Positions 3,369 through 42,992 of a stretch of 64,000 nucleotides of DNA are shown in pieces. The notes under the pieces were generated by a model. The model worked only from the letters and a program-made list of their open reading frames with translations. It made no database searches and was not told the origin of the DNA. The position numbers and the translations under genes were made by a program. Numbering within the stretch: position 1 is the stretch's first letter; each line of letters begins with the position of its first letter. Origin of the DNA: Anaeramoeba ignava BMAN (Eukaryota; Protista; Anaeramoebae); the NCBI GenBank assembly GCA_028826165.1, contig JAPDFW010000092.1, positions 310,001 to 374,000 on the forward strand, in the 5' to 3' direction.

Positions 3369-3539
3369 AAAGAATGGGAATATGAGCAATATGTGTCTTT
3401 CTTGGAAATTTAATACAAAAAAATGTTGCAAATGCTGCTAAAAAGGAAATTAAAAAAAAATTCCAAAAAAAAAATTTTTTTTGTTCCACTTTTTCTTTTA
3501 AAAAAATCAATAAAAAAAAAAAAGAATAAAATTTTGAAT

Positions 3540-5742: not shown

Positions 5743-6000
5743 TAATTTAAACTAAATTTTTTCAATATTGAATTTTTAAATTAAAAAGAAAAAAAATGAA
5801 AATTTGTTTTTTTGGGAATTTTATCTTTTTTTTTTTTGGAAAGGTTTGTTTGAATTTGTCAAAAAAAAAATAATTTGAAAAAGCAAAAAAAATTCTTTTG
5901 ATCTCAATCCAAAAAAAGCAAATGGAAAGAGAAACTAAAAGAAAATCAAAAATCAATAATAAAAAAATCAATATAAAAAAAAAAGAATAAAATTTGAAAT

Positions 6001-18969: not shown

Positions 18970-21900
18970 TCATTTTCTTTCATTAATTCCCCAAATTCTT
19001 AAAAAACCTTCACAATCACCAGAATAAACTTGATTTAAATCTGCAAAATAAAACAAAGAAGTAGTTGGAACATTAGACTGAATTTCGATTGTAAAAATAT
19101 GATTTAAATCAAAAGCATCAAAAATATTGATATTTCCACTTTGAGTTCCAGTAAAAATCACATTTCTTAAAGTTCCAAAATCAGCTGAACTGAAAGTGGC
19201 TGAATGAATGAAACCTTGAGAATTCGGAGACAAGTTTTTTGTTGTTATAAGATGCCCATTAATTGTCCACAAATTGAGAGTGTTAATATTTTTTTGTGAA
19301 TCAAAATCAAAAATTTTTTGAGAATAAAATTTTGATGAAAAAGTAACAATATCACCAGTGATTTCACTTATTGCAAGAGTAGAAACAGGACCAACATGAT
19401 TTTCCAATGAAAAAACACAAGATAAAGAATTCATATCCCAAATAATAACAGATCCATCAAGTGATGCAGTCAAAATCACATGAAATTCAGAAGATGCAAT
19501 AATTTTTAAAATTGAATCAGTGTGTCCAAACAATTTATCTTTAAACTTAAATCCTGTGATTTTCTTTTGTGAACGGATGATTTCCCAAATATATACTATT
19601 CCTTTTTTTCCGCCTGCAATGAATATACTTCCATCATTTGGAGTTGCACAACAATAAATAATATCATCAATATCTTCTCCAAATGTTAGTAAAATTTTTT
19701 TGGATTTATTAATACTTGATAATTTGAATGAATCCTCAAATTCCTTTATTTGTATAATCATTTCCTTTTCTGGTTTTATTACGCATGTGTTTTTGTGAAT
19801 TAATATAATATTTTTTCCTTTGGAAACAATTTCTTGAATTGGTGAAGTTGTTTTCTTACTATCAATACAGGATAATAAATGTAAGTTTGAAAGTAAATCA
19901 TGTTGATTATGATAATTTTTGAGAAATTCTCTTGAAAGAAGTTCTTTTATGTTTTCATTTTCATTTTCAATTTCATTTCCATTTTCATTTTGATTTTGAT
20001 TTTCATTTTCAATTTGATTTTCATTTTCATTTTCATTTTGATTTTCAATTTGATTTTCATTTTCATTTTCATTTCCATTTTCATTTTCAATTTCATTTTG
20101 ATTTTGATTTTGATTTTGATTTTGATTTTGATTTTCAATTTCAATTTGATTTTGATTTTGATTTTGGTTTTGATTTTGATTTTGATTTTGATTTTGATTT
20201 TCATTTTGATTTTGATTTTGATTTTGATTTTGATTTTGATTTTGATTTTGATTTTGATTTTGATTTTGATTTTGATTTTGATTTTCATTTTGATTTTGAT
20301 TTTGATTTTGATTTTGATTTTCATTTTGATTTTGATTTTGATTTTGATTTTGATTTTGATTTTGATTTTGATTTTTATTTTCAATTTCAATTTCATTTTG
20401 ATTTTGATTTTCAATTTGATTTTGATTTTGATTTTGATTTTGATTTTGATTTTGATTTTCAATTTCAATTTGATTTTCAATTTGATTTTGATTTTGATTT
20501 TGATTTTGATTTTCATTTTGATTTTCATTTTCATTTTCATTTTCATTTTTTCAATTTCAATTTGATTTTGATTTTGATTTTGATTTTGATTTTGATTTTG
20601 AATTTGATTTTCAATTTGATTTTGATTTTGATTTTGATTTTGATTTTCATTTTCAATTTGATTTTGATTTTGATTTTGATTTTGATTTTCATTTTGATTT
20701 TCATTTTGAATTTGATTTTCAATTTCAATTTGATTTTCAATTTGTTTTTCAATTTCAATTTGATTTTCAATTTGATTTTGATTTTGATTTTGATTTTGAT
20801 TTTGAATTTGATTTTGATTTTGATTTTCAATTTGATTTTCATTTTCAATTTCATTTTCATTTTGATTTTGATTTTCAATTTGATTTTGATTTTGATTTTG
20901 ATTTTGATTTTGATTTTGATTTTGATTTTCAATTTCAATTTCAATTTGGTTTTCATTTTGATTTTCATTTTGATTTTGATTTTGATTTTGGTTTTCATTT
21001 TCAATTTGATTTTGATTTTGATTTTGATTTTGATTTTGATTTTGAATTTGATTTTGATTTTGATTTTGATTTTGATTTTGATTTTGATTTTGATTTAGAT
21101 TTTGATTTAGATTTTGATTTTGATTTTGGTTTTGATTTTGATTTTGATTTTGATTTTCATTTTCATTTTGATTTTGATTTTGATTTTGATTTTCATTTGT
21201 TAATTCATTTGTTAATTCATTTGTTAATTCATTTTGATTTTCATTTTCATTTTCAATTTTAATATTATTATTATTATTATTATTGTTGTTGTTGTTATCT
21301 TCTTTGAATTGAAATTCATCTTCTTTTGAAATCAACATTCTTCTTTTTGGATGTTGTCTCTTAAAAATTTGAATAGGAGTTTGCCCAAAATTTTGGATCA
21401 TAGTAATAAATCCTTTTTTTTCAGATCCATCTTGAATTGAATCAATATCGATTCCACCTTCATAACTATATGGATGGAATGCATTGCATGAGTTAACAGC
21501 TCTTTTTCCTTTTTGTTTATATCCAAATATCAAATCAATCCATAAATGAATATTTTCAGAAACATAAGGAGATTCAAGAGCTTCTGAATACATTTTAGTT
21601 AATGATCTTGGATCATGGCGATTAATTTCACCCAAAATTATGTGATCAATTATTTTTCCTCTGTGGTTTATTCCTAAATTATAACCATTTAAATTCCATA
21701 AGAATTCATGAAGGAAGAAAAACTCTGGAGTCAATTCCTTTAAAGTGTTTTGGAAATTTCCTCCAACTTCTTTTGTAAACTTGGGGATCGAAGCAAACAT
21801 TCGATCAGGAAGATCGAATTTTCCACTTTGAAAATCAACAAGCAAAGATGCAAATGGTTCCAAACGAGCCATAAAGAAAAGTACTGTTCCTGGATTTGAG

Positions 21901-24900
21901 TAATGTGTTCCATAGTTATAAGGAGGTTCTCCATTTCTTAAAAGCTCACGATAGTGCTTTTGAGCATAATTGAATTGTTCTTCTGTTTGAGCTCCCATTG
22001 GTTTTGAGAGATCTCGAAACATTTTCAAATCATTAAAATTTGTATTGTTGAAATTTGCGTCTTTGAGGATATTTGGTAATACTGGATATTGAGCCAAATC
22101 ATTGTAAGTTCTTCCTGCTAACGTGTTCAAATGCATCAAATATGCAAAATTGCTAATTTTGTGATTTTCCCAAAGTTTTGCGATTGATTTTCTTAGCGAT
22201 GATCCAATTGTTGATGATTCATAATCAATATAATGCGGTAATTCATGACTTAATATTTTCTCAAATACTTCATCTCTTTGATTCGCTTTTTCAAATGCAA
22301 AAAATAGTGTTTTACCTGTTGTCATAAAGAATTCAATTCCAACATTTTTTAGTAAATATCTTCTTTTGTGAATCTCTTTAATTTCGGAATATAAAATTGC
22401 CAAATGGTTATTAGAATTTGGATTTGTTTTTGTGGCTAATTCTCCTGTTATCGAAAGTTGAGAAAACTCTTCAATGAAAAAATGTATTTTCTTGTCTGAT
22501 ATTAATAGATCTCCTGAATATTCTGTGAGTAGTTTCACCCTAACACATTTTACTGTTATTTGCACGGTTTCATCAGATAATAATATATTCTTTACATTTA
22601 GGAAGAATTCTCGAGTTCCTGATAGCAATACTTGATAACTGAGAATATTGAACTTTATTAATTTTTTCATGATCTTTTTGGGATTAATTTCGGAATTTCT
22701 TAATATTTTCTGTATTTTTTGATTAATATATTGTGTATCCTCATTTTCATTTTCATTATTTTCATTATTTTCATTATTTTCACTTTCATTTTCATTTTCA
22801 TTATTTTCACTTTCATTATTTTCACTTGAAATTGTTGCATCTTTTTCAATCTCAGTTTTGAATCCTTGTTTTCTTTTTTCGTAAAGATAAATTTGGACGA
22901 TGAAATTATTTCGAAATCTGCAATATTCAATAGAATTTTTTGATGTGTTTTTCATTTGCAAATATCTTTTGCGGAACTCTTGTCGATCTGAAAACATTCT
23001 CTTCAGTTCTCCATCTCTAAAATTAAAAGGATTATGAGGCGAATCAAACTCAGCTAAATGATTGCCAATTTTCTTCATATCAACAAATCTTTTTTTCAAT
23101 CTTCTCCTTGTTCTATTTGGACATTCTGTCTCATCAATCTCAAACAAAACTAATTTCTCAGGAAGATTCCAGACACCTTTTTCATGTGTCATTTGTTGAT
23201 ATATATGGATGCATTTCTCGGAAACGAAAGATTCTTCATCAACGATTTTGCGGAACTTATCTAGTGCTTTTTTTCTTAATTCATTTTTCTTTTGGAATAG
23301 AAGATTGATTGCTTGATTTTGGGTTTCCTTCACTTTGTATTGGTAACTGCCTCGATTAGCTATAATATCTGCTTCCATTTCTTTAAATTTCTGATGAAAA
23401 TTCTGGGATTGAGCAAGCTCGTTTTTGATGAAAAATTGCGCTTTGGATTCTGTGCAAGACAAAATGATTTGTTTGTAATTGCTTTTGTATTGCAATTCGA
23501 GTTTTTTCCTTTTCCTTGATGATGACCCAATAATGTTTTTGGAATACTTCTTATTTTTCAATGCCTTATAAAAAAGTACTTCAATATCACGAGTTAAATA
23601 AGGAAATTTTGGTGATGTAAGTTTCGAAATCAAATATCCGAATATCACAGATGTTTCTTTGGATTCAATCATTAATGTGAAAAAGTCTTCATTTGTTGTA
23701 AAAAAATTTATGATGAATTCATGCAGTTTGTGAGAATTTGAACAATCCAGAAATGTATATGTTAATTTCATAATATTTTTATAAATATCTTCTTTGATGT
23801 TTTTGATAAATTTAGAATTTGAATGATTCATTTCATTCAAGCTTCTGTATTCCATTGAAAGAATTCCAAAGAGATGGCGAATGAATACGAAATCCTTTGA
23901 TGTCGGGAACTCTTGCTCTTCAGATGGGAATGCATTAGCAGAAAATAAGAATTGTGAAGAATTCCAGCTTCTTGTTAATTTTTTTTCTTCTGTTTCTTGG
24001 AAAAGATTGTTATTGATATAAGCATTTGATTTTGAATTTTTTAGAAAAAATTGAGTTTGTTGTGAATGATTTGCTTTTGGTAATGGAGACTGTGGGTTAT
24101 TTTCTTGCTCAGAAAAAAATGTGCAGTTTATCCAGAATAAAACTAGATCGGTGATCAATTTCTGATTTTCGACAAAATTTGAAATGAAAACCTCATCGGT
24201 TTCTTTGATTTTTTTCTGGAGATCTGTATGGAATAAAATGATCAAAGCAATTGCAATTTGTTGTTGGTATTCTCTGACTTGATTTTTGCTGAAATTTTTG
24301 ATGGACATTAAATTACAAAATACTTTCATCACAACATCTTGAATTCCTCCTTGAATTTTGCAGCTATATTCACAAATATCAATCAAGAAAAATATCAATT
24401 TTTCTTCTTTTTTCAACTTTTCATCATTTTTTGTTTTTTTTTGAGGACTTGATTTAATTGATTTTAGTTTTGCCAATGATTGGAAAGAGTTTGCAAATAT
24501 TGAGGTTTGGTTTTGATTTGCTTGAATCAATGAATTTTTTAAGTTTTGACTCATGTTCGAAAAGGATTTTTCACTAATTTCTTCTTCACTATAACTATAA
24601 CTATTACTATTATTATTACTATTATTATTACTATTACTATTACTATTACTATTATTATTACTATAACTACTCAAACTCAAACTAAAACTATCATTATTTG
24701 AGTTATTATTATTATTATTGAATGTATTTGGATTTGTTAATAAATTGGATTCGAAATTTTGTGGAAATTCCTTTCTTGTATTGGATTGCTCGTTCTTATT
24801 TTTCAAATTGATATTTTGATATAATTGATTCCTTTGTGGTTTTTGTTCTTGTTCTTCTTGGAGAATTGTTAACAACTTGCAAACATGTTCTATGATTCCT

Positions 24901-27900
24901 TTTTCAATGTATTCTTTTTGATGGTTTTGATTGAAAATTTTTTGAATGGATTCGATTATATTTATTTGTTGTGCTGCATCTTCTGTGATTTCAGAAACCA
25001 TAAAAAGCGGAACAAAAACAAAATTTTTAAAAAGCATCGAAAATAATTCGTCGAATAAATCTTTTACTGGAAATTGTTGAAGTTGGAAACCTAAAACATC
25101 AAGAGCTGAAGAAACAGTGAATGATTGAAGAATAGGTTTGAAGCCAATAATAATGTTGATTAATCTGACAAAAAGCAATCTTGTTTCATCTGAAATGTGA
25201 TTAGTCAATGAAACTAGTATAAGAGGAGACAAATTTGAAATGAAGGTTTTGACTTCTTGTTTTCGGGTTGATTCATTTTGACTCACTTCATTTTGGATTT
25301 TATCAACAAACATTCTAATCACAGAAACTCTCGACAAAGAATGATCATAAGGAAATTCGTCATCATCGTTGATAATATTAATCCCTTTGATGTTATTTTC
25401 ATCCTGATTATTTTCCCTATTTTCATTATCTAAATTTTTCTCTTGTTTTTTTTCCACAATATCTTCTAATTTTGGTTTTGTTTCTTCTGTATCAAAATTT
25501 AATAAGTTCTCGATATTCTTTTTCTTAAAATCATCAGATACAGATCTTACAATTGGCTCCATATTCATATTTTCTTCTGCTCTTCTTAAGGCAGGATACC
25601 CGCTTTTGGGAATAGGATTTCCTTTCATTTGATATTTGTTTGTATAATTTGTGCTTCTACTTTTCACAATTTTGGGTCCATTGGAATTTATGGATAAAAT
25701 TTCAGCGCGAGAATGATAATGATGTGTTTCAATGATATAACTGAAAATTGCTTCATAATCTGATTGTTTTTGTGTGAATTTTTCCATTATACCAACAATT
25801 ATATCAATTATAGCTGGGTCAAGAATTGGATCATCTCTGAAAATACTTAATAATTTAGCAAGGAAATTGAGCTTGCTTAGGCAATCAAAATTGTAAAGAA
25901 TTGAATCTGTTGTGTTGTTTGTCATTATGCTTAAAATTGTTGAGAATAATTGGATTTGAACATCTTTTTCTGCTCTTCGCCAAATTTGCCAATTCAAAAT
26001 TAAATGTTTAAATGCAGATCTATTGAGTATCAATTTATTTGGAGATGAACTCCATTGTTTTGTTTCTTTTTCATTCTCAAACTCATCTTGATTTGGAGAG
26101 GATGTAATCCCACAAAATTGAAAGCAGCACGCAAGAATTTTGGAGTCAAGATTCCAATCGTTATGAGAAAGAATTCTTGCAATCACTTGATATAATTTCG
26201 AGTTTTTCATTTCTCTCAGATTTTGGGTGTTGTTTTGAAGAAATGCTATTAATAATTCCAAACTTTTGTGTTGATATTCCTTAGTTCTGAAAAGAGAAGA
26301 AGCAAGAAAATAAACAACTAAGGATATTCCTCCAATAGAATCTATTGCCTCTTTGACTGTTGTTTTGTGTATGAATTTTGTGTGAGTATTCTTGAGATGG
26401 ATTTGTTCTTGTGTGATTTTGTGTGAATAAAGTGAATTATAAGCTGATTTCAAAGTTTGCTCGTCATTTCTTGATGATCTCTCATTTTTGAAAACCAAAT
26501 ATGATTCTTTCTTCAAATACAATGAAAATAGTAAATTTACTCGAAGTTTTTCAAGAGATGAAATGGATAAAAAGTCTTGTTGATTGGGAATTTGGTTTGA
26601 TTTGGAAGTATTAAATTGGCAAAATGAGAAAATATGATCATCAGAAGCATTAAAAGAATGAGGCATGTAATCAAACCCCAAGAAATACAAATTCAGCACA
26701 TCTGTCTGAGTGAATTGCTGAGAGAAAATGTGGACATTTCCCAGATAAAGATGATAGGCTTGAGGAAGCGATAAATTCCTTCTCCTTCTTCCAAAACAAA
26801 GTGAGTTTATTGAGTTTTTTTTGATTTCAAATGGGAAACTTGTGTTGCTTGTTTTTCTTCCGTTGATGAATAAAGCGAGATTATCTGTATCTCCAACTAA
26901 ATTGATTTTCTTCTGAGAAAAGCATAAAACAACATGATTCCATTTTGATTCTTCAAATTGTGATTCTTCAAAAACAATTTTTTTGGAATTTTGCTTGTTT
27001 TTAATGATAACCTCAAGTTTGGATTCAGTATTTAATGATATTTGCAAAACAGACTCGTTTTGTTTCTGTTTCTTCGAGTTTTTGATAAAGCTAATAAGTG
27101 GCTTGTAAGAATTTGGTATTTGCTCAGAAAAGGAAAACCAGAAACTGATTGTAATATTCTCTTGCCAATTACAAATGCTCCCAATATTTTTAACTGCAAT
27201 TTTCCCATATTTGTTTTCTGGAGAAACTTGAATACTGAAATAACTTGAAGGAGAAGTTGGAAACTTGTTCATTTTTGTTAAAATTTCAAGTATTTTAATC
27301 GGAAATGATTTTTCTTTCATGAAAGTGAACAATCTTTTGATTTCAATAACACTAATTGAACAAGAACCAAAGTGTTCAATAAGTTTGAAGCATTTTTTCT
27401 TGTAATGGATGAGAAGATGCCATTATAATTTTGGGATATTTATCAAAAATGGAAGAAAGAAAAGAAGAAGTAGATACAGAATATCGATTTGCTTCATTTT
27501 GTGAATAAAGTATAAGAGTTTTGAACACAGGTTGTATTGTTTCAATGGAAATTTTCTGAGATTTAATTTGCTTAGAAAAAAGCTCAAAGATATTATTAAA
27601 TGCAAGAGGGCATTCAATTTGAGGGAATTTTTGTTTTGGATATGTGTTTTCATAGAAAAATACTTCTGACAAAGATGCAAATTGATTTTGATTTTGATTT
27701 TGATTTTGATTTTGATTTTGATTTTGATTTTGATTTTGATTTTGATTTTGAATTTTGAATTTGATTTTGGTTTTGATTTTGATTTTGATTTTGATTTTCA
27801 CTTAAATCATCAGTATTCTTCATTTCTTGAAAATTTTCATAGAAATTTAATGTATATCCTTTGTGATAATTTTGAAGAATTGATTTAACGGAGAAAATTG

Positions 27901-30900
27901 AATAGGATTTATTACAAATATTTCGATGAGATTCAAGAAAATCTATCATAGTTTGTGTGAAAATGGGGATCTTTTGTTGAATATTTAAGCTTTGTTCTTC
28001 TGTAAATTGATAAATTCTTTGTATTTGTCCAGTAAATGCAAGATTGAGAAGAGAATCAACAATAATAACGAAGTTTGATTTATTTTCAATTATCTTAGTT
28101 TTATCAAGAGCTGCAATAAGTTCATATAATGGGCAATATTTCAGCATAGCTTCCTGATTAGTAATGTTACGATGTAAAAGAATAGCAAGAAAACGAAAAA
28201 TATTATCAACAAAAATCAAAAATGAAACTGAGGCATATTCAATTTCTTCGTATTCTCCAGAGCAAATTGAAGTGAATTTTTGCGTTGTTTCGATAAAAAC
28301 TTGGTGTAAATTTGAGAAGATGTTGTTTTCTCTGAAAATATTTTGAAATTGATGATCTGAAATGACAAATATCGAGAACAAAGAAAGTAAATCAATTTTG
28401 TTTTTCAAATCAATAACAAATAAATTGGGAAATGAATTTGATTTGGAGAAGTTTGATATCAAATCAGGAATTAATAAATTGAAGTATTCAGATTTAACAA
28501 GAACTAAATCAACAAAATTGAGGAAAATTTGATTTCTGAATTTGGGAATATCGAACAAATAAGAAATTTCATTAATTCCTTTTTTGCTTGTGAATGTAAT
28601 AATGTTTTCAGGGTTTATTTTGAGTACTAAATATAATAAACGAATTAATGTCTTTAGTAATAAAGAGCTTGTTTTTTTATCAATAATTTGATTTTTATTT
28701 TCAATTTGATTTTTATTTTGATTTTGATTTTGATTTTGATTTTGATTTTGAATTTGATTTTGATTTTGAATTTGATTTTGATTTTGAATTTGATTTTCAT
28801 TTTCAAATTGATTTTGATTTTGAATTTCATTTTCAAATTGATTTTGATTTTGATTTTGATTTTGATTTTGATTTTGATTTTGATTTTGATTTTGATTTTG
28901 ATTTTGATTTTGATTTTGATTTTGAATTTGATTTTCATTTTGATTTTGATTTTCAATTTGATTTTGATTTTGATTTTGATTTTGATTTTGATTTTGATTT
29001 TGATTTTGATTTTCAAATTGATTTTGATTTTCAAATTGATTTTCATTTTCAAATTGATTTTCATTTTCAAATTGATTTTCCATTTCATTTTCCATTTCAA
29101 TTTCAAATTGAATTTGATTTTCATTTTCAATTTCGAATTGATTTTCCATTTGATTTTTATTTTCAATTTCATTTTCAAATTGATTTTCATTTTCCATTTC
29201 ATTTTCCATTTCAATTTGATTTTGATTTTGATTTTGATTTTCATTTTGAATTTGAATTTGATTTTGATTTTCAAATTGATTTTCATTTTCAAATTGATTT
29301 TGATTTTGATTTTGATTTTCATTTTCAAATTGATTTTCATTTTGAATTTGATTTTGATTTTGAATTTGAATTTGATTTTGATTTTTATTTTGATTTTCAT
29401 TTTCAAATTGATTTTGATTTTCATCATCTTGAATTAATAAATTAGAAAAATCTTGAGTAAATTTATTCGTTTTACTTCTGAAAAAAGAAACAATTAATGA
29501 TCTTAATTTTTTAGATTCTGATGAAAGTCTTGAAACAATAAAATTGACAACACCACCAATTCTTAAATACTCTTCGAATCGACGATTTAAAGAAATAATT
29601 TTAGCAATGTGCAAAGAAATTTGAACACTTACAGATTCATCGTGTTTTGGAGATAAAAGTCTGCAATAAGGCTTTAGAGTAAATGAACTATTATCAAGAA
29701 GAACCAAGAATTTGATGAAATCCAATATTTTTTCTTGAATTGATTTTTTGTGATTTTCAAAATCATAGCAAATGAACTCAACAATATTCAATTTGAGCTC
29801 TTTTAATAAATCTAAATTGTATTCTTGAATATGATCAATCAAGACAAATATTTTGTCTTCAATATTCCAGGAAATTGAGTAATTTTTGAAAATATGGAAG
29901 AGAGTTTTGACAGAATAAAGATATTGGAAATTTGCCTCTTTACTTAAGTCATTCAATATTGTTTGTTTTGGCAAACTGGGGAAATCAAAGAAATTAGATT
30001 GTCGATATAATTTAGATAAATCGACAGCAATATTTAGCAATTCAAACATTGAATCATCCCTTTTTGTTTGATGGAAAAGAATGATACTCGAAGCTAGGAT
30101 TGAATATCCATGATTTTTTCTGAAAGAATCAACTATTTCATTGAAGGATGAGTTCAAACATTGTTGGAAAACAAAGAGAAACAATTTGAAAATATTGATT
30201 ATTATGATTGATTTTGATTCAATTTTAAAAATTGAGGACAAAAGAAGATGAACAATAGAATTAATTGAGGAAATGCTGTTTTTGTTGTTGATTTTGCTGT
30301 TGATCTTTGTGAAGATTTGGTAATTGAGAAAAATTGCTTTTAAAATCCTTAGCATTTGAGCTGAAACATCAAAAGAGGATTGGGAAGATATGATCAAATG
30401 GAAAATGATTGAGATTTGCGGTTCTTGAAGGAATTCTTGGAGATGATAATCAATTTTTGTTAAATTTTCCAAAATCAAAAGAGAAAGAAGAAAAAAAGAG
30501 TGATTTGATAAATTTTGAGAATTGATTTGAGATTGGAAATTATCATTATTATAATTAAGAAAATTTTCTTGTTGGAATAAAATAGATCGAGAAGGAGAAA
30601 AATCTGAAAAAAGAACTAATGAAGAGAATATAATCTGGATTAAACCTTTGAAAACAAAGTTGTGTTTTGAAGTAAATTGATAAATAATTTCCATGATTTC
30701 TAAATTTGATTGATTTTGAATAAAATTAAGAAAAGGGGATTTTGATTGGGAAACTGATTTTAAAGATTTTTGAAATTCTAATAACAAATAATTCATCATT
30801 TGATTGAAAAAATTTTGGATAAAAGGAAATTGTAAAGGAATTGATTGAATGCTTGTTTTTTTCATTAATGAATAAAAGGAATGAATGAATTTTTTCATGT

Positions 30901-31033
30901 GATTATTTTTTTCTTGAGGATTTCTTTGTTTTTGAGTGATTAGCCATAAGAAATGAATTTGAATTTTTTCTTTATTCTTTTTAATGTTTTGATCTCTTTT
31001 TTCCTTTTTAATTTTTTTGTATTTTCGGTTCAT
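18970..31033 (-). CDS. Giant BEACH-domain protein (ARM-like, ConA-like lectin, PH-BEACH, BEACH, WD40; LYST/Lvs-like), ~4000 aa, apparently intronless, three frameshifts
   Basis: ORFs 31033-27650, 27801-27376, 27332-19947 and 19761-18970 join through shifts at ~27750, ~27395 and ~20548, all in repeats or A-runs. BEACH motifs [50 protein letters not shown] and NFGQTP; PH motif [14 protein letters not shown]; WD40 motif LFGHTDSI...[12 protein letters not shown]. Confidence 0.85.
19952..21300. repeat. Coding (AATCAA/AATGAA)n microsatellite = NQ/NE tract between BEACH and WD40
   Basis: About 1.35 kb of hexamer repeat with no splice donor seen; coding sequence is in frame on both flanks after a 2-nt correction. 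Confidence 0.8.
28690..29425. repeat. Coding NQ/NE microsatellite in the BEACH N-terminal region
   Basis: In-frame hexamer repeat inside ORF 31033-27650. Confidence 0.85.
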
Positions 31034-31304: not shown

Positions 31305-32590
31305 TTTTTTTATTTTTTTGACTCATCAATTTAATTAAAAATTTAATTAAAAAATTTGATTAAAAAATTTAATAAATGTTAGTTTTATATTTTTGTGAAA
31401 TATAATTTCTTGCTTCTGTTTCAATTTTTTCTAAACTATTAAATTGTTTTTTCTTTTTTTGTGGAAATGGTTTATGAAAAAATATTTCTCTTGATAGAGT
31501 AACTCTTGAAAAGAAAGTTCCTGAATAATTTCTAATTTTACAAATTAGAATACAATATTTAATTTTGGATTGATTTAATTTTTATTTAATATTGATTTAA
31601 TATTGATTTAATTTTGATTTAATTTTGATTTAATTTTGATTTAATTTTGATTTAATATTGATTTAATTTTGATTTAATATTGATTTAATTTTGATTTAAT
31701 TTTGATTTAATTTTAATTTAATTTTGATTTAATTTTAATTTAATTTTGATTTAATTTTAATTTAATTTTGATTTAATTTTAATTTAATATTGATTTAAAT
31801 TTTGATTTAATTTTGATTTAATTTTAATTTAATTTTGATTTAATTTTGATTTGATATTGATTTAATTTTAATTTAATTTTGATTTAATTTTGATTTAATT
31901 TTGATTTAATTTTGATTTAATTTTGATTTAATTTTGATTTAAATTTAATTTAATTTTGATTTAATTTTGATTTAATTTTGATTTAATATTGATTTAATTT
32001 TAATTTAATATTGATTTAATTTTGATTTAATATTGATTTAATTTTGATTTAATTTTGATTTAATTTTGATTTAATTTTGATTTAATTTTAATTTAATTTT
32101 GATTTAATTTTGATTTAATATTGATTTAATTTTAATTTAATTTTGATTTAATTTTGATTTAATTTTGATTTAATTTTGATTTAATTTTGATTTAATTTTG
32201 ATTTAATTTTGATTTAATTTTGATTTAATTTTGATTTAATATTGATTTAATATTGATTTAATTTTGATTTAATTTTGATTTAATATTGATTTAATATTGA
32301 TTTAATTTTGATTTAATTTTGATTTAATTTTGATTTAATTTTGATTTAATTTTGATTTAATTTTAATTTAATTTTAATTTAATTTTAATTTAATTTAAAT
32401 TTAATTTTGATTTAATTTTGATTTAATTTTGATTTAATATTGATTTAATTTTGATTTAATTTTGATTTAATTTTAATTTAATTTTGATTTAATTTTAATT
32501 TAATTTTGATTTAATATTGATTTAATTTTGATTTAATTTTGATTTAATTTTCATTTTCATTTTCATTTTCATTTTCATTTTCATTTTGAT
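31305..32590 (-). repeat. Direct repeat R3: orphan copy of HPS4 last-intron 11-mer microsatellite + last exon (31531-31369) + 3'UTR
   Basis: Near-identical to 39921-40410. Homology stops at ~31305, where unique BEACH upstream sequence begins. Confidence 0.9.
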
Positions 32591-32630
32591 TTTATTTTCA
32601 AATTTGAATTCAATTTGTTTGGTTGTTTTG

Positions 32631-35600
32631 CTATTTTTCTATCAAATTTTCATAACAGGATAGCCAGTCAACCGGATTTATTTTCTTTAATTCTTCATAA
32701 TTAACCAAAATAACTGGATCTTCTGCAAATTGAGAAGATTTCAGAAAATGTGAGCTAGAAGAGATGTAAACATAATATTGATTGGATGGAAGAATATATG
32801 TTTCCTTTCGAGTTTTTTGCTTGTTTTCTTCTTTTTCTTTGTTTTCTTTGTTTTCTTCGTTTTGAGAAGTTTTCTTATTTTTTGATTTTTGAATCTTTTT
32901 TTTTGATATATTTTGTATCAACTGTAAAGTCTTTTCATCTAAAGTTATTCCTGATAATTTTGAATAATATTCTAAAACTGAAGTTGTTTCTTCTTTATTT
33001 GGTTTAAAATTTCTTTTGAATAAACCATCAACTTTTGGTTTATTTTGAGAATAATCTAATGTTGAAACTTGAAAGTAAAAGAGTTGTTTTTCGTTTTTCT
33101 TATTTTCAGATAAACAAACGAAATCAACAACAGAATGATCTTGGAAACACACAATCAAATCTCCGATTGAAATATGTTCCAATTTATTTTTCCTCTCTTG
33201 GTGAATGATATTTTTTATCTGAATTTCAAATAATTTGGGTTTTTTTTGATTTTCTCCTTTCAAATTTATATTTGATAATTTAAGAGAGGAATTCAAAAAA
33301 TATTTAAATCCATTCAAAACAAATAATTCTAATGCTCTCCATTTATCTCCGATTTGACATAATAAATTGATATAAGTTACTCCTTCATTTTTGAAAATTT
33401 CAAGAATTGCTTCTTTTACCCATGCACAAATTGGAACAATTTCCTTTTCTAATGATCTTACAAGGTTTCTTTGATTAATCTTCCTTTTTTCATTTTCATT
33501 TTCTTGATCATTGAAGTGACTTGATTCAAAGATTTGAGTTTCAAATAAACCCGATAATTCCCAAAAGTTAGGCAAAGAAGTAATATTTTGATTTAGGCAA
33601 ATAAGAGTTGGAAATTCAATCTCTTGTCTGATAGTTTGAGGATTCTTGAATTCTTGGATTTTATCCAGAACATAATTAACTCTTTGTTTATAATATTCAA
33701 TAGAATCTACAATACATTCACTTTCAAATTGAAGTTGAGGAAATAATTTTTTTTTCCTGTTTCGATAAGTTGTTGTTATAATATCTAATACTCTTGGAAC
33801 TTTGTTTGTAAACTGTTCCCAATAATCTATTTTTGCATCTTCTGGAATTTTTCTTTCTTTTCTTTTCCATTCGAAAATTGATTCAAATTCTAATTCACTA
33901 AAAAAAGTTGGTTTCACTCCAAATTCCTGAAAATTAATATTCGTAAGCTTACTCTGATTAAAACTTGAGCTCACAGCTGTTATTATCAACCCACTTCTAA
34001 TTTTTGGTAAATTCATGAAAATATTTAAAATATGTTTTCTCTTTTTAAATTGTTCTCTATAAAGAACATTATATTCATCAATTGCAATCAGAACTTTAAA
34101 TTCTTCGACATCTAATTTAAAAAAGTTTCGGAAAAAATTTTCGCAATCCTGAACCATTAGTTTTTTATCTTTTCGAGTAATTTTTTTTTTATTCCATAAT
34201 TTATCATCATAATCAAATCCACATTTTTGAAATAATTTTGTTCCATATCTTACAAAAAGATCTTTCATTATGTCTTGAGCAACAGAATAACTTTCAGAAT
34301 CTCTTAAACTAAATAAATCAGTCAAATAAATAACAACCCATTTTTGATTTTCATTTGAATTTTCATTTTCATTTGAATTTTCATTTTCATTTGAATTTTC
34401 ATTTTCATTTGAATTTTCATTTTCATTTGAATTTTCATTTGAATTTTGTTGATTGGATTCTTTCTTTTGTTGAACTTTCCATGGCTTTCAATTTGATTTT
34501 AAATGATTTTTCAATTTCCAAACATTGAATATAAATATAAATATAAATATAAATATCAATATAAATATAAATATAAATTTAAATTTAAATATAAATTTAA
34601 ATATAAATATAAATATAAATATCAATATAAATATCAATATAAATATCAATATCAATATAAATATAAATATAAATATAAATATAAATATAAATATAAATAT
34701 AAATATAAATTTAAATATAAATATAAATATAAATATAAATATAAATATAAATATAAATATAAATATAAATATAAATATAATTATAAATATAAAATATAAA
34801 TATAAATATAAAATATAAATATAAATATAAATATAACAAATAAAATTATAAATATAATAAATATAAAATATAAAATATCAAAATATAAATATAATATAAA
34901 TATAAATATAAATATAAATATAAATCTAAATATAAATATAAATATAAATATAAAATATAAATATAAATTTAAATATAAATATAAATATAAATATAAATAT
35001 AAATATAAATATCAATATAAATATAAATATAATTATAAATATAAATATAAATATAAATATAAATTTATAAATTTAAATATAAATATAAATATAAATATAA
35101 ATATAAATATATAAATATCAATATCAATATAAATATAAATATCAATATCAATATATCAATATCAATATAAATATAAAATATAAATATAAATATAAATATA
35201 AATATAAATATAAATATCATTTTTAAATATTTATTTTTGGATTGAAAATTTATACATTAAAAAATAAGAGAAATAAAGCAAGATGAAAAAGAGTGTAAGA
35301 TTTCCTGTTCCATTTCCTCCATATAAAATGATATTTTTCTGTGGATCCTTCCTCGATTTGTTTCATCAAAAGATTGTGTTTGTTCTCGTATCAAAATTGG
35401 AGATAAATTTCCAAGTTTTTGTTTTCAATTTCCACTAGAGAAAAAGGAAAATATTGCAAGATATTCCTCAATTTTTATTGCAATTTTCTAGTTTTGAATG
35501 TTCTTGAATTGGAATTGTTTGCAAGTTCTTTTTCAAGTTTTTCAAGTTCTTTTTGAATTTCTTTTTCAAGATCTTTTTCTTGTTGATGTTTAAGTAATTG

Positions 35601-35642
35601 TTCAACAAAAATTTTTGTTTTTCTTGAAGAGATTTTTGACAT
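32631..35642 (-). CDS. Crinkler/RHS-type P-loop NTPase + PD-(D/E)xK REase-fold protein, copy B (exon 1 frameshifted in this sequence)
   Basis: Exons 35642-35256 (many homopolymer indels versus copy A) and 34484-32631 (intact; 4 aa differences from copy A in the 564-aa ORF). Confidence 0.65.
34485..35255. repeat. Intronic (AAATAT)n microsatellite
   Basis: Hexamer repeat in the copy B intron. Confidence 0.9.
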
Positions 35643-35911
35643 TTAAAAATAAAAATAAAAATGAAAAATTTTTAATCAAAAATCTTTTTAAATTGTTTTC
35701 ATTAACGATTAGTTTATAAGTTAATATTTTCTTTTCAAATTGATTTAAAAATCATTCAATAATCAATTAAATTTTTCTCATTTTTGTTCCACTTTTTAGT
35801 TTTTCTCAAAAATTATTTCTTAATTGAAATAAAGAAAATATTAATTTAGAATAACTAAAAATGATTAAATTATAATTTATAAATTAATTCAAATTAATTG
35901 ATTTTTTTGTT

Positions 35912-36960
35912 AATTTTTATTTTTTTGACTCATCAATTTAATTAAAATTTTAATTAAAAATTTGATTAAAAAATTTAATAAATGTTAGTTTTATATTTTT
36001 GTGAAATATAATTTCTTGCTTCTGTTTCAATTTTTTCTAAACTATTAAATTGTTTTTTCTTTTTTTGTGGAAATGGTTTATGAAAAAATATTTCTCTTGA
36101 TGGAGTAACTCTTGAAAAGAAAGTTCCTGAATAATTTCTAATTTTACAAATTAGAATACAATATTTAATTTTGGATTTATTTAATTTTGATTTAATTTTA
36201 ATTTAATTTTGATTTAATTTTGATTTAATTTTGATTTAATATTGATTTAATTTTGATTTAATATTGATTTAATTTTGATTTAATATTGATTTAAATTTTG
36301 ATTTAATTTTGATTTAATATTGATTTAATATTGATTTAATTTTGATTTAATTTTGATTTAATTTTGATTTAATTTTGATTTAATATTGATTTAAATTTTG
36401 ATTTAATTTTGATTTTATTTTGATTTAATTTTGATTTAATATTGATTTAATTTTGATTTAATTTTGATTTAATTTTGATTTAATTTTGATTTAATTTTGA
36501 TTTAATTTTGATTTAATTTTAATTTAATTTTGATTTAATTTTGATTTAATTTTAATTTAATTTTAATTTAATTTTGATTTAATTTTAATTTAATTTTGAT
36601 TTAATTTTGATTTAATATTGATTTAATTTTGATTTAATTTTGATTTAATATTAATTTAATTTTGATTTAATTTTAATATTGATTTTAATTTAATTTTGAT
36701 TTAATTTTGATTTAATATTGATTTAATTTTGATTTAATTTTGATTTAATTTTAATTTAATATTGATTTAATTTTAATTTAATATTGATTTAATTTTGATT
36801 TAATTTTGATTTAATTTTGATTTAATTTTGATTTAATTTTAATTTAATTTTGATTTAATTTTGATTTAATATTAATTTAATTTTGATTTAATTTTGATTT
36901 AATTTTGATTTAATTTTGATTTAATTTTCATTTAATTTTGATTTAATTTTGATTTTGATT
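35912..36960 (-). repeat. Direct repeat R2: orphan copy of HPS4 last-intron microsatellite + last exon (36137-35975) + 3'UTR
   Basis: Near-identical to 39921-40410 and 31305-32590. Confidence 0.9.
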
Positions 36961-36999
36961 TTATTTTCAAATTTGAATTCAATTTGTTTGGTTGTTTTG

Positions 37000-39632
37000 T
37001 TATTTTTCTATCAAATTTTCATAACAGGATAACCACTCAACCGGATTTATTTTCTTTAATTCTTCATAATTAACCAAAATAACTGGATCTTCTGCAAATT
37101 GAGAAGATTTCAGAAAATGTGAGCTAGAAGAGATGTAAACATAATATTGATTGGATGGAAGAATATATGTTTCCTTTCGAGTTTTTTGCTTGTTTTCTTC
37201 TTTTTCTTTGTTTTCTTTGTTTTCTTCGTTTTGAGAAGTTTTCTTATTTGTTGATTTTTGAATCTTTTTTTTTGATATATTTTGTATCAACTGTAAAGTC
37301 TTTTCATCTAAAGTTATTCCTGATAATTTTGAATAATATTCTAAAACTGAAGTTGTTTCTTCTTTATTTGGTTTAAAATTTCTTTTGAATAAACCATCAA
37401 CTCTTGGTTTATTTTGAGAATAATCTAATGTTGAAACTTGAAAGTAAAAGAGTTGTTTTTCATTTTTCTTATTTTCAGATAAACAAACGAAATCAACAAC
37501 AGAATGATCTTGGAAACACACAATCAAATCTCCGATTGAAATATGTTCCAATTTATTTTTCCTCTCTTGGTGAATGATATTTTTTATCTGAATTTCAAAT
37601 AATTTGGGTTTTTTTTGATTTTCTCCTTTCAAATTGATATTTGATAATTTAAGAGAGGAATTCAAAAAATATTCAAATCCATTCAAAACAAATAATTCTA
37701 ATGCTCTCCATTTATCTCCGATTTGACATAATAAATTGATATAAGTTACTCCTTCATTTTTGAAAATTTCAAGAATTGCTTCTTTTACCCATGCACAAAT
37801 TGGAACAATTTCCTTTTCTAATGATCTTACAAGGTTTCTTTGATTAATCTTCCTTTTTTCATTTTCATTTTCTTGATCATTGAAGTGACTTGATTCAAAG
37901 ATTTGAGTTTCAAATAAACCTGATAATTCCCAAAAGTTAGGCAAAGAAGTAATATTTTGATTTAGGCAAATAAGAGTTGGAAATTCAATCTCTTGTCTGA
38001 TAGTTTGAGGATTCTTGAATTCTTGGATTTTATCCAGAACATAATTAACTCTTTGTTTATAATATTCAATAGAATCTACAATACATTCACTTTCAAATTG
38101 AAGTTGAGGAAATAATTTTTTTTTCCTGTTTCGGTAAGTTGTTGTTATAATATCTAATACTCTTGGAACTTTGTTTGTAAACTGTTCCCAATAATCTATT
38201 TTTGCATCTTCTGGAATTTTTCTTTCTTTTCTTTTCCATTCGAAAATTGATTCAAATTCTAATTCACTAAAAAAAGTTGGTTTCACTCCAAATTCCTGAA
38301 AATTAATATTCGTAAGCTTACTCTGATTAAAACTTGAGCTCACAGCTGTTATTATCAATCCACTTCTAATTTTTGGTAAATTCATGAAAATATTTAAAAT
38401 ATGTTTTCTCTTTTTAAATTGTTCTCTATAAAGAACATTATATTCATCAATTGCAATCAAAACTTTAAATTCTTCAACATCTAATTTAAAAAAGTTTCGG
38501 AAAAAATTTTCGCAATCCTGAACCATTAGTTTTTTATCTTTTCGAGTAATTTTTTTTTTATTCCATAATTTATCATCATAATCAAATCCACATTTTTGAA
38601 ATAATTTTGTTCCATATCTTACAAAAAGATCTTTCATTATGTCTTGAGCAACAGAATAACTTTCAGAATCTCTTAAACTAAATAAATCAGTCAAATAAAT
38701 AACAACCCATTTTTGATTTTCATTTGAATTTTCATTTTCATTTGAATTTTCATTTTCATTTGAATTCTCATTTGAATTTTCATTTGAATTTTCATTTGAA
38801 TTTTCATTTGAATTTTGTCGATTAGATTCTTTCTTTTGTTGAACTTTCCATGGCTTTCAATTTGATTTTAAATGATTTTTCAATTTCCAAACATTGAATA
38901 TAAATATAAATATAAATATAAATATCAATATAAATATAAATATAAATTTAAATTTAAATATAAATTTAAATATAAATATAAATATAAATATCAATATAAA
39001 TATCAATATAAATATAAATATAAATATAAATATAAATATAAATATAAATATAAATATAAATTTAAATATAAATATAAATATAAATATAAATATCAATATA
39101 AATATAAATATAAATATAAATATAAATATAAATATAATTATAAATATAAATATAAATATAAATATAAATATAAATATAAATATAAATATAAATATAAATA
39201 TCATTTTAAATATTTATTTTTGGATTGAAAAATTTATACATTAAAATAAGAGAAATAAGAAGCAAGATGAAAAAGAGTGTAAGATTTCCCTGTTCCATTT
39301 CCTCCATATAAAATGATATTTTCTGTGGATCCTTCCTCGATTTGTTTCATCAAAGATTGTGTTTGTTCTCGTATCAAAATTGGAGATAAATTTCCAAGTT
39401 TTTGTTTTCGAATTTCCACTAGAGAAAAAGGAAAAATATTGCAAGATATTCCTCCAATTTTATTGCAATTTTCTAGTTTTGAATGTTCTTGAATTGGAAT
39501 TGTTGCAAGTTCTTTTTCAAGTTTTTTTTCAAGTTCTTTTTGAATTTCTTTTTCAAGATCTTTTTCTTGTTGATGTTTAAGTAATTGTTCAACAAAAATT
39601 TTTTGTTTTTCTTGAAGAGATTTTTTTGACAT
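37000..39632 (-). CDS. Crinkler/RHS-type P-loop NTPase + PD-(D/E)xK REase-fold protein, copy A (748 aa)
   Basis: Exons 39632-39240 and 38853-37000 with a phase-0 GT-AG intron. Walker [13 protein letters not shown], Walker [10 protein letters not shown], sensor-like FTNKVPR; REase-like motifs WRALE, HSVVDFV and LFYFQVS. Confidence 0.75.
38854..39239. repeat. Intronic (AAATAT)n microsatellite
   Basis: Hexamer repeat in the copy A intron. Confidence 0.9.
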
Positions 39633-39983
39633 TTAAAAAATTAAAAAATAAAAAAAAAATGAAAAATTTTTAATCAAAAAAAAAAATCTTTTTAAATTGT
39701 TTTCATCAACGATTAGTTTATAAGTTAATATTTTCTTTTCAAATTGATTTAAAAATCATTCAATAATCAATTAAATTTTTCTCATTTTTTGTTCCACTTT
39801 TTAGTTTTTTTTTTTCTCAAAATTATTTCTTAATTGAAATAAGAAAATATTAATTTAGAATAACTAAAAATGATTAAATTATAATTTATAAATTAATTCA
39901 AATTAATTGATTTTTTTGTTAATTTTTATTTTTTTGACTCATCAATTTAATTAAAATTTTAATTAAAAATTTGATTAAAAAAT

Positions 39984-42805
39984 TTAATAAATGTTAGTTT
40001 TATATTTTTGTGAAATATAATTTCTTGCTTCTGTTTCAATTTTTTCTAAACTATTAAATTGTTTTTTCTTTTTTTGTGGGAATGGTTTATGAAAAAATAT
40101 TTCTCTTGATGGAGTAACTCTTGAAAAGAAAGTTCCTGAATAATTTCTAATTTTACAAATTAGAATACAATATTTAATTTAGGATTGATTTAATTTTGAT
40201 TTAATTTTGATTTAATATTGATTTAATTTTCATTTAATTTTGATTTAATTTTGATTTAATTTTGATTTAATTTTGATTTAATTTTGATTTAATATTGATT
40301 TAATTTTGATTTGATATTGATTTAATTTTGATTTAATTTTCATTTAATTTTGATTTAATTTTGATTTAATTTTGATTTAATTTTGATTTAATTTTGATTT
40401 GATATTGATTTTACTCTAAAATTAATTGAGATATTTCTTCGTTAGAGTGAAAAATATTATGACAAATTGATGAAGTTCGAAGAAATTGAAAATCATTTTC
40501 AATATAAGGATCAATATCTGAAATTGAAATTTTCTTTAAAAAACGATCAAAAATAATAGAATTTGGATTCTTTTTATAAAATAAAACAAAGTTAAATAAA
40601 ATGAATATATTTTTGATCTCTTGAAATAATTTAATTTTATCAATAAAAATACAAGATTTTGTTTAGGAGATTGTTTAACAGAATTTGGTTTTGGAGATGA
40701 AACAAGATAATTATGAAGTTTTTTCATTTTGGAATGAAATTTTGTTTGCTTTTAATTTTTTTTTAAATTTGAATTTTTTGTTTTGGAAATTAATTTTTTT
40801 TTTCTTTAAAATTTAAATTAAAGAAAATTCACAATTGTTTTAATTTTCTTCTCATCAAAAATTCTTGATAATTGTGTGATTATAATGAATGATAATTCTT
40901 TAAATTTAGAAATAGTTAATCCAAGATATTTTCCATCTTGATGTTTTTTAAGAAAAACCTAACAATTTTTATTTTAAAGAATATTATTTTAAAGAATATT
41001 ATTTTGAATATTATTTTAAAGAATATTATTTTGAATATTATTTTAAAGAATATTATTTTGAATATTATTTTGAATATTATTTTAAATATTATTTTAAATA
41101 TTATTTTGAATAATTATTTTTAATATTATTTTGAATATTATTTTAAATATTATTTTGAATATTATTGTTGATACTTCTGGTATTTTTTCACCATATCTTG
41201 AATTATATCTGAATAATTGATTCATATCTTTCTTAGAAAGTTGATCATAGCTTTCGGATTTTGTTGATTTAATTAAAACTGGAGAATTTAATCCATTTTT
41301 CTTAAGCATAGAAAATGAATATCCTTGTGAATGAGAACGTTTTATTTGATCTTGATTTGAAAAATTGTAAAAATTATAATGATTATTATTATTATTGTTG
41401 TTATTATTGTTATTGTTGTTTTCATTTTCGTTTTCAATTTGATTTTCAATTTGATTTTGATTTTGATTTTGATTTTGAATTTGATTTTGATTTTCAATTT
41501 GATTTTGATTTTCAATTTGATTTTGATTTTGATTTTGATTTTGATTTTGATTTTGATTTTGATTTTGAATTTGATTTTGGTTTTGATTTTGATTTTGATT
41601 TTCAATTTGATTTTGATTTTGATTTTGATTTTGATTTTCACTTTCATTTTCATTTTCAAAATTTTTATCATTTTTATTCTTGAAGAAAAAAACAGGAACA
41701 CTTTCCAAAATTGTGAAATCTTTTTCTGATTCTATTAATAATTGTTTTCTTAAATTTTCAGTTGAATAACCAAATAATTCAAAATCTTCAATTTTTTCAT
41801 CAGTAATTTTAAATTGTTGTAATTCTTTTTCAGTTAAATAAAGTAATCTAATATAAGAATATTGAGTTGAAACAAAATCAAGACTTCCACAAATATATTT
41901 ATTATCATAAAGTAAACAAGCATCAATACAACCATCAGTTAATTGAATTTCTTCAATAATTTGAGTTGCTAAAAGAAAAAATCTTCGAGATCCCTTTTAA
42001 AAAATGAAAAAAATGTTTGAAAATTTAAAAAGAAATTATTTTTTGTTGATTTTTTTTTACTTTTGGAAAATCAAAATATGGAAGATGATGAAAAGGAGAA
42101 AGAAGAAGATTTGTTAGATCAAACATTTTTGAAAAGAGTAATGGAACTAATTCTCGTGTTGCTTGTTCTAATAAGCTTTTAAAATAATCTTCTGAACCTT
42201 CTGCTCTCTTTAAAACATTTCAATTAAAATTCATTTATAAAATTAAAATTAAAATTCATTTATAAAATTAAAATTAATATTAAAATTAAAATTAAAATTA
42301 AAATTAAAATTAAAATTAAAATTAAAATTAAAATTAAAATTAAAGTTAAAATTAAAATTAAAATTCATTTATAAAATTAAAATTAAATATTAATATTAAT
42401 TAAATAGAATTGATTTACTTCTCGTAAATGTTTTATTGAATGATTGAAAAATTTAAAACAATCAATAAAGAAATGATGATGTTCTCTTAAAGTTTCATCA
42501 ATAATATTCAAAGAAGATTGAGCAAAAACAGAAAGTATAGAATCACCAATAGGAATAACACTAATTTTCAAAGTAGATAAAGAAACAATATCAAGATTAT
42601 TTGGAGTGAGATTTTTCATTGAGTCTCTAATTGAAAGAATTGCTCCAGCTAATTTTTCTTGCATTTGTTTATTGATTTTTGGTGGAAAAATACATAAACA
42701 TTTTTCTGGTTGTTCATCTTCATTTTCTATTTCTTCTAAACAAATTTCTTTAATCCAACAAATAAATCCTTCATTAAAAGGATTTTGAGTATTTTCTAAA
42801 TTCAT
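39984..42805 (-). CDS. HPS4: BLOC-3 subunit HPS4-like tri-longin protein (630 aa)
   Basis: Seven GT-AG exons, all in frame (1893 nt): 42805-42419, 42207-42061, 41993-41175, 40958-40833, 40748-40653, 40569-40415 and 40146-39984. The N-terminal longin (EDEQPEKCLCIFPP...QEKLAG...CFKFFNHSI), central FLLATQIIEE..CIDACLLY, and C-terminal FDR...FLRTSSICHNIF...ILENYSGTFFSRVTPSREIFF match my recollection of HPS4/CCZ1-family motifs; HPS4 is preferred over CCZ1 on the C-terminus. Confidence 0.72.
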
Positions 42806-42992
42806 TATAAATAAAGAATGAAAAAAATGAAAAAAATGAAAAAAATGAAAAATTAAATTCAATTTTAAATTTAAATCAATTTTATTCCAAAAAATCGAAA
42901 TAAATCAAAAAAAAAGAAAATCATTCAAAAAAAAAGAATTGAATCAAAAAATTAGAAAAGAAAAGAAAAGAAAAGAAAAGAAAAGAAAGAAA

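Follow-up and report, generated by a model that had tools for sequence, protein, structure and literature searches.

How does a whole gene come to lie, twice over, between three copies of the end of its neighbour? This question is raised by a 64,000-nucleotide stretch of the genome of Anaeramoeba ignava BMAN (C82:310001-374000, here called the window), which was analysed against its own 42.8-Mb assembly. On the minus strand, the window carries an HPS4/CCZ1-like gene, the array R-C-R-C-R, unique DNA and a BEACH gene, in this order. R is made up of the last intron (an array of 11-mers), the last exon and ~60 nt of the 3′ untranslated region (UTR) of the HPS4/CCZ1-like gene. C is a 3-kb cassette with a two-exon gene, whose product is predicted to combine a P-loop NTPase with a domain of restriction endonuclease (REase) fold. 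With moderate confidence, we read the array as an insertion of gene-sized DNA with a long duplication of its target, followed by unequal crossover and brought about by a recurrent host process.

Structure of the array

The array was mapped by self-BLAST, TRF and pairwise alignments, which reproduce to the base the R-cassette-R-cassette-R order described in an earlier note on this DNA (Table 1). Each R consists of an exonic part, e (~263 bp), and an 11-mer array, M. The three e parts are mutually 98–99% identical, end on the same base 2 nt past AATAAA and, in a search of the genome, occur nowhere outside the array. R1, the copy joined to the host gene, has one synonymous change, e3 is the most diverged (four to five private changes, including Pro to Leu), and each of the three e copies has private changes. 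The 11-mer array fills almost the whole last intron. A repeat is thus present at one junction, as the earlier note had it, but it is minisatellite-like (227–1029 bp) and not a microsatellite. The order of 11-mer variants in M1, M2 and M3 yielded no usable history.

The host gene matches Intu_longin_1 with 24.4 bits against a cut-off of 23.7, and the label "HPS4" resolves only to a probable member of the HPS4/CCZ1/INTU longin family. On the other side of the array, the BEACH gene encodes a product of ~3600 residues, and 274 bp separate its start codon from the end of R3.

Table 1. Coordinates of the array, its parts and its two neighbouring genes in the window
Feature	Position	Strand	Basis or content
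BEACH-domain (LYST/WDFY-like) gene	19947..31033	-	open reading frames (ORFs) 27650-31033 and 19947-27332; homologues with PH_BEACH and Beach domains
L, unique DNA between R3 and BEACH start codon	31034..31306	.	R3 homology to R2/R1 ends at 31307
R3	31307-32598	-	e3 and 11-mer array of 93 units
e3, third copy of host last exon and ~60 nt of 3′ UTR	31307..31570	-	alignment
M3, 11-mer array	31571..32598	-	~93 units; TRF
C2, second cassette	32599..35913	-	ORFs, alignments to C1
C2 exon 2	32631-34484	-	intact
Microsatellite in C2 intron	34528-35217	-	(TATATT)n
C2 exon 1 region	~35250-35640	-	~9 one-base indels relative to C1; upstream region beyond
R2	35914..36955	-	e2 (35914-36179) and 11-mer array of ~70 units
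C1, first cassette	36956..39922	-	ORFs, domain searches, fold models
C1 tail	36956-36999	-	45 nt
C1 exon 2	37000-38853	-	includes stop
C1 intron	38854-39239	-	contains (TATATT)n
C1 exon 1	39240-39632	-	Walker A GGNGTGKS
C1 upstream region	39633-39922	-	290 bp
R1	39923-40411	-	e1 and 11-mer array of 20.6 units
e1, functional host last exon and 3′ UTR	39923..40185	-	exon 39984-40146; in frame with preceding exon
M1, 11-mer array, nearly entire host last intron	40186..40411	-	20.6 units; intron GT at 40413-40412
HPS4/CCZ1/INTU-family longin gene, upstream exons	40412..42811	-	ORFs; Intu_longin_1

The array opens and closes on host sequence, and the earlier note was right that this goes beyond a pure tandem duplication. 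Two units are followed by an extra R that abuts unique DNA, a layout that needs either an R-C-R precursor or a deletion. Pure tandem duplications keep their outer neighbours, and therefore the junctions of R1 with the host gene (H) and of R3 with the unique DNA (L) would be ancestral if only duplications had acted. The ancestral locus would then have been H-R-L, and C would have come with the second R. An insertion with a long target duplication, as the note proposed, is the simplest reading of this topology, and a later unequal crossover between R copies fits the identity of the internal junctions.

These identical junctions are equally a feature of another candidate origin, in which a circle with C and one R entered the end of the host gene through one homologous crossover, either in multimeric form or on two occasions, to give (R-C)n-R. 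The array is exactly the product of multicopy single-crossover integration, known from insertion vectors, which likewise leaves the host gene intact, and pop-out between R copies would remake such circles. The circle, however, must carry R beforehand, and how a locus-specific R was first acquired is left without an account for three loci with three different R (see below). Neither plasmid-like functions nor extra copies are seen, and no circle is known in A. ignava. We regard this origin as quite improbable.

The gene anatomy given in the note (290 bp upstream, exon 1, (TATATT)n intron, exon 2 and 45-nt tail) holds, and the splice from exon 1 to exon 2 is backed by a conserved FNP (FN|P) junction, which is uninterrupted in the annotated paralogue P0003. 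Over 1.7 kb of exon 2, 13 substitutions and no indels separate C1 from C2. Nine of these changes are synonymous (one is a TAA/TAG stop variant), and the other four are non-synonymous and conservative. The intron microsatellites and the 11-mer arrays are also of unequal length. The substitutions and length differences thus identify C1 and C2 as distinct copies, not one sequence written twice, and the 9:4 ratio indicates that both are real and under constraint.

In the 5′ ~700 bp of C2 (35218-35913), which hold the upstream region and exon 1, comparison with C1 shows ~15 indels and almost no substitutions. The indels are mostly one base long, many lie within homopolymer runs, and they look like unpolished Nanopore consensus, not reached by short-read polishing, rather than decay. 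The assembly is Nanopore-based and was built with ABruijn (PMC11550330). Both the assembly type and these indels would suit an artefact in which the true locus holds one unit (R-C-R or R-C) and the assembler wrote alleles or noisy reads in tandem. Against this stand the clean substitutions between copies with their synonymous excess, the very different array lengths, the private changes in each of the three e copies and the similar brackets at independent loci, and an artefact of this kind is very improbable.

Introns and spacers throughout the window are filled by long 6-, 11- and 12-mer arrays, several of which are 75–82% similar to the 11-mer array of R. Besides the array, direct repeats of at least 300 bp in the window are confined to 3499-7577 (two adjacent paralogous genes) and 50889-52063 (a tandem internal repeat).

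The layout at other loci

P0003 detects ~20 family loci in the A. ignava genome (at least 20), and ~10 of these, 249 kb in all, were examined for bracketing repeats. At two of them, here named by their handles C90 and C65, a family member stands between direct repeats of host DNA that differ from R and from each other. The repeats at C90 are 897 bp long and 94.8% identical (~1% substitutions), and consist of the 3′ part of the upstream host ORF and the DNA downstream of it. The upstream copy closes with a short (GATTTT)n, which continues into 74 units in the downstream copy. At C65, a divergent paralogue is bracketed by 975-bp repeats with 99.0% identity, which take in a complete class-IV aminotransferase coding sequence from 7 nt before the ATG through to a (TTTTAA)n array of unequal length, short upstream and long downstream. 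At both loci the host gene and the cassette share a strand, which also holds in the window. The long target duplication that the earlier note proposed for the window thus recurs with different host DNA.

Two side observations concern these repeats and the gene between them. Alignment of the C90 paralogue (120825-122558) to P0003 reads through 16 stop codons, with flanking repeats that are only ~1% different; the paralogue is either a decayed copy or a poorly polished stretch. The ends of R match gene landmarks: in the window R is traceable from the second base of the last intron as far as 2 nt past AATAAA, and at C65 it begins just ahead of the aminotransferase ATG. This may be chance, or transcription units may shape the duplicated stretch.

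Bracketing is not a general property of the family. No bracketing repeats are found at C87, C82b, C104 and C56, and in all at least six of the ~10 independent family loci examined are without them. At C70, a tandem array has three units, and the cassette splits the hexamer microsatellite of one of them; the remaining two are uninterrupted and represent paralogous empty sites. At C115, a pair of family members sits between blocks of a 155-bp satellite. Stretches ~62000-81000 and 816000-835000 of C115 are inverted segmental duplicates >19 kb long (88–99% identity) near both ends of the 947-kb contig, and each copy has one family member between 154/155-bp AT-rich satellite blocks. Homology to the C115 paralogues seemed to run on into the 11-mer array, but this is AT-rich similarity to the 154/155-bp satellite, and no array is shared.

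The background of long repeats in the 249 kb is low. With repeats of the family genes and the C70 array excluded, only two repeat pairs of at least 300 bp are present, both of them close tandem duplications in the window. By this rough estimate, three bracketed loci in ~10 are far above chance.

The recurrence bears on a third account of the window, in which C is an old neighbour of the host gene and a local triplication of [R+C] was followed by a deletion that took out the last C along with part of the DNA downstream of it, with the left breakpoint at the end of R. Only ordinary events are involved, and the lack of a close donor of C elsewhere is accounted for. The junction of R3 with L lies in an A-run, a possible microhomology, and R3 is the most diverged R copy. 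On the other hand, this course must recur independently at C90 and C65 to leave an extra terminal R, it takes three events instead of two, and C56, which is paralogous to the locus C62 described next, shows an insert-free state. Triplication and deletion are an unlikely explanation.

The same layout is also formed by other genes. Segments 176950-196949 of C56 and 527850-547849 of C62 are inverted segmental duplicates with flanks that are 88–94% identical, and differ by a 5.95-kb block, which comprises an unrelated two-gene insert and a second copy of an NTPase gene. C56 has a single NTPase gene between a 143-bp satellite and (TCAAAT)n, whereas C62 has the NTPase gene, 3.9 kb of unrelated DNA and the NTPase gene again. 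The 3.9-kb insert holds genes for a RING-kinase and an SH3-RhoGAP. The duplicated stretch of 2.09 kb takes in ~190 bp of the satellite and ends within the microsatellite, and here the NTPase gene itself is the duplicated target. For one half of the insert, a locus on C95 is a donor-like copy with 88–96% identity, whereas nothing exceeds ~80% for the other half; with such unlike best matches, the insert is a mosaic. At C46, by coordinates, a TLDc gene (288433-288879, plus strand) lies between two minus-strand cofilin copies 4.7 kb apart. The same layout thus occurs with other inserts and other targets, and the NTPase-REase gene would therefore be cargo and not the driver.

Cassette ends and the encoded protein

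The earlier note saw in the cassette a possible self-mobilising element, and this is not supported. In a whole-genome BLAST, the best matches to C outside the array are only 76–80% identical overall, and in the four closest paralogues homology is restricted to the gene and ~100 bp to either side of it. The 290-bp region ahead of the start codon is present only in C1 and C2. Cassette ends vary by locus, with a tail after the stop codon of 0, 45 or 150 nt. Of the two expectations attached to a genome search with the cassette, ends shared between copies are not found, and flanking repeats of different local host DNA are found at C90 and C65. Terminal inverted repeats (TIRs) are absent from all five cassettes examined, in agreement with the note, and no transposase domain was detected in the cassette. 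The marks of a TIR transposon are thus missing: there are no TIRs, no copies share ends, and the duplications vary from 0.49 to 2.1 kb.

An autonomous element could still be imagined in which the NTPase-REase protein makes a break in the target, staggered by several hundred bases, and places its own gene there, leaving kilobase target-site duplications. The R-C-R layout at three family loci, each with a different R, is what such an element would produce, and cut-and-paste would suit the missing donor. The pairing of an REase fold with an NTPase has also been tied to prokaryotic transposons (Zhang et al. 2016, as summarised in PMC5289972). Yet no ends are shared or inverted, the cassette boundaries differ at every locus, near-identical copies are only local or segmental, and the majority of the independent loci examined lack bracketing repeats. 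Moreover, unrelated inserts show the same topology, the NTPase gene also occurs as a duplicated target, and the (D/E)xK motif of the nuclease is replaced by QxS. An autonomous element is highly unlikely.

Other classes were considered and dropped. Helitron, Mutator-like element (MULE) and Crypton readings fail for want of ends, TIRs or a recombinase, and retroposition was rejected since the copies retain the intron. Identity between C1 and the C104 paralogue reaches 91.6% in exon 1 (~419850-420210 of C104) and only ~80% in exon 2. This mosaic suggests gene conversion or recombination between paralogues.

The exons were searched and folded separately, and the annotated paralogue P0003 provided the full-length view. 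An exhaustive HMMER search with P0003 finds only 39 relatives, and those outside A. ignava come from Jimgerdemannia (Mucoromycota), Rhodelphis and metagenomes. The Walker A sequence GGNGTGKS in exon 1, preceded by ~85 residues, identifies a P-loop NTPase domain. Matches of the window copy to DAP3 and AAA_16 are weak and below the Pfam cut-offs; in relatives the DAP3 cut-off is exceeded. Relatives have DAP3, STAND or AAA_16 matches, and one fungal relative has a weak Mrr_cat match. The exon 2 model has a pLDDT of 81 and weakly matches Cdc6/Orc1, mS29 and STAND ATPases (Foldseek E from 2e-3).

The C-terminal 238 residues form a model with a pLDDT of 92 and an REase fold. Almost all of its top 50 VIA-align matches are PD-(D/E)xK nucleases, with modest Z scores of 3.8–6.4. 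Foldseek of both models against the PDB gives no match at E <1e-3, and the fold assignment is based on VIA-align and on the make-up of the match lists. Across 29 sequences, E, H and D are conserved, and the third motif reads QxS, followed by Y..H..K, in place of (D/E)xK. The nearest Atlas clusters are annotated as Mucoromycota "Crinkler family protein". The NTPase and REase assignment of the note holds at the level of fold (VIA-align, Foldseek and cluster matches), and any nuclease activity would be putative.

This layout would be that of the C-termini of Crinkler/RHS-type effectors. According to the summary in PMC5289972 of Zhang et al. 2016, the C-terminal modules of CR effectors consist of a P-loop NTPase, optionally a helix-turn-helix (HTH) and an REase domain. 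The A. ignava protein resembles them in domain order, with a DAP3/STAND-like P-loop NTPase followed by the REase-fold domain, and in its nearest sequence relatives. It differs in the altered (D/E)xK triad and in that neither a Crinkler/ubiquitin-like (Ubl) header nor a secretion signal is detected: exon 1 and the full-length paralogues P0003 and P0004 have no match to the Pfam Crinkler family (PF20147). A further difference is that A. ignava is free-living.

Mechanism and consequences

What is observed is the topology with its recurrence, the absence of element ends and the folds of the protein; the order of events and the molecular mechanism we infer as follows. A gene-sized segment with one gene of the expanded NTPase and REase-fold family would have entered the 3′ end of the HPS4/CCZ1-like gene. 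In the process ~0.5 kb of target would have been duplicated, from the last intron through the last exon to the poly(A) signal in the UTR; the result would be R-C-R, with the host gene left intact, and unequal crossover between R copies would then have added the second unit. The source is most probably host replication or break repair, by template switching that re-enters upstream of the exit point or by fill-in of a widely staggered break, in either case often with one junction in a microsatellite.

Our best guess is that a host replication or repair process, and not a transposase, is at work. It is suggested by the variable duplication lengths and insert ends, the mosaic insert at C62, the position of one junction in a tandem repeat in four of four cases and the independence from any one gene family. 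A direct target duplication with the insert at its junction, as template switching would leave it, is found in the window and at C90, C65 and C62. In the window, the tail of C and the start of the intron share 9 nt (TAAAATCAA) and an A-run lies at the junction of e with L; at C90, 0–1 nt are shared.

Rearrangements of the type described as fork stalling and template switching (FoSTeS) or microhomology-mediated break-induced replication (MMBIR) consist of tandem duplications with a templated insertion at the junction and arise from replication template switching. The A. ignava loci resemble them in several ways: foreign DNA sits precisely where two direct copies of the target meet, inserts may be mosaic (as at C62), junctions lie in repeats or possible microhomology, and the duplication length varies. 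They differ in that whole genes of 2.5–4 kb are inserted, that no donor survives for the window locus and that the events recur in a protist genome, where they apparently contribute to gene-family spread; the likeness in mechanism is by inference only. In maize, alternative transposition leaves an Ac element at the junction of tandem direct duplications and needs transposon termini and transposase. The R-element-R topology and duplicated flanks of a kilobase or longer are the same there, whereas the A. ignava cassette is without termini, TIRs or a transposase domain.

Several observations weigh against insertion with target duplication by such a process. No donor of the window cassette survives, the best paralogues being those at 76–80% (with the higher value for exon 1 of C104 only). 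R copies among themselves, and C1 and C2, are only 1–2% apart although no close C exists elsewhere, and copying should leave a near-identical C. The missing donor would mean that it was lost, that a fragment was cut and pasted or captured after excision, or that gene conversion homogenised the repeats. At C62 and C56, all three gene copies are ~98% alike, and because they are equidistant, insertion in C62 and pop-out in C56 are indistinguishable. Triplication followed by deletion of the last C would look identical at the window locus. The four of four junctions in tandem repeats are only suggestive, since 32% of the window, which has ~20% G+C, lies in tandem repeats (TRF score ≥80). The layout of the array is that of the Nanopore-based assembly. 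Finally, neither an outgroup nor an empty allele was found for the HPS4-BEACH locus. A search of A. flamelloides with the long BEACH ORF returned one protein, P0048. At its locus the match is confined to the BEACH domain and no HPS4-like gene is adjacent; it is therefore not the orthologue, and the comparison of synteny is void.

If recurrent insertion with target duplications of hundreds to thousands of base pairs is true, genes would spread without breaking their neighbours, the ends of host genes, or indeed entire genes, would be duplicated incidentally, and the resulting arrays would enlarge through unequal crossover. A layout of R-X-R with young R, where X is any insert, is a concrete signature that can be counted genome-wide. 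For the Crinkler-like NTPase-REase family, the lesson is one of caution, as a position between long direct repeats is by itself no proof of self-movement.

Anaeramoeba genomes have very large lineage-specific expansions of gene families (PMC11550330). It is a tentative and rather doubtful extension of our reading that A. ignava has an undescribed, recurrent mode of gene dispersal, in which segments of 2.5–4 kb insert with target duplications of 0.03–2 kb, leave host genes intact and amplify as R-X-R. Such a mode would perhaps be aided in trans by the NTPase-REase proteins, and it may lie behind the expansions of gene families in this genus.

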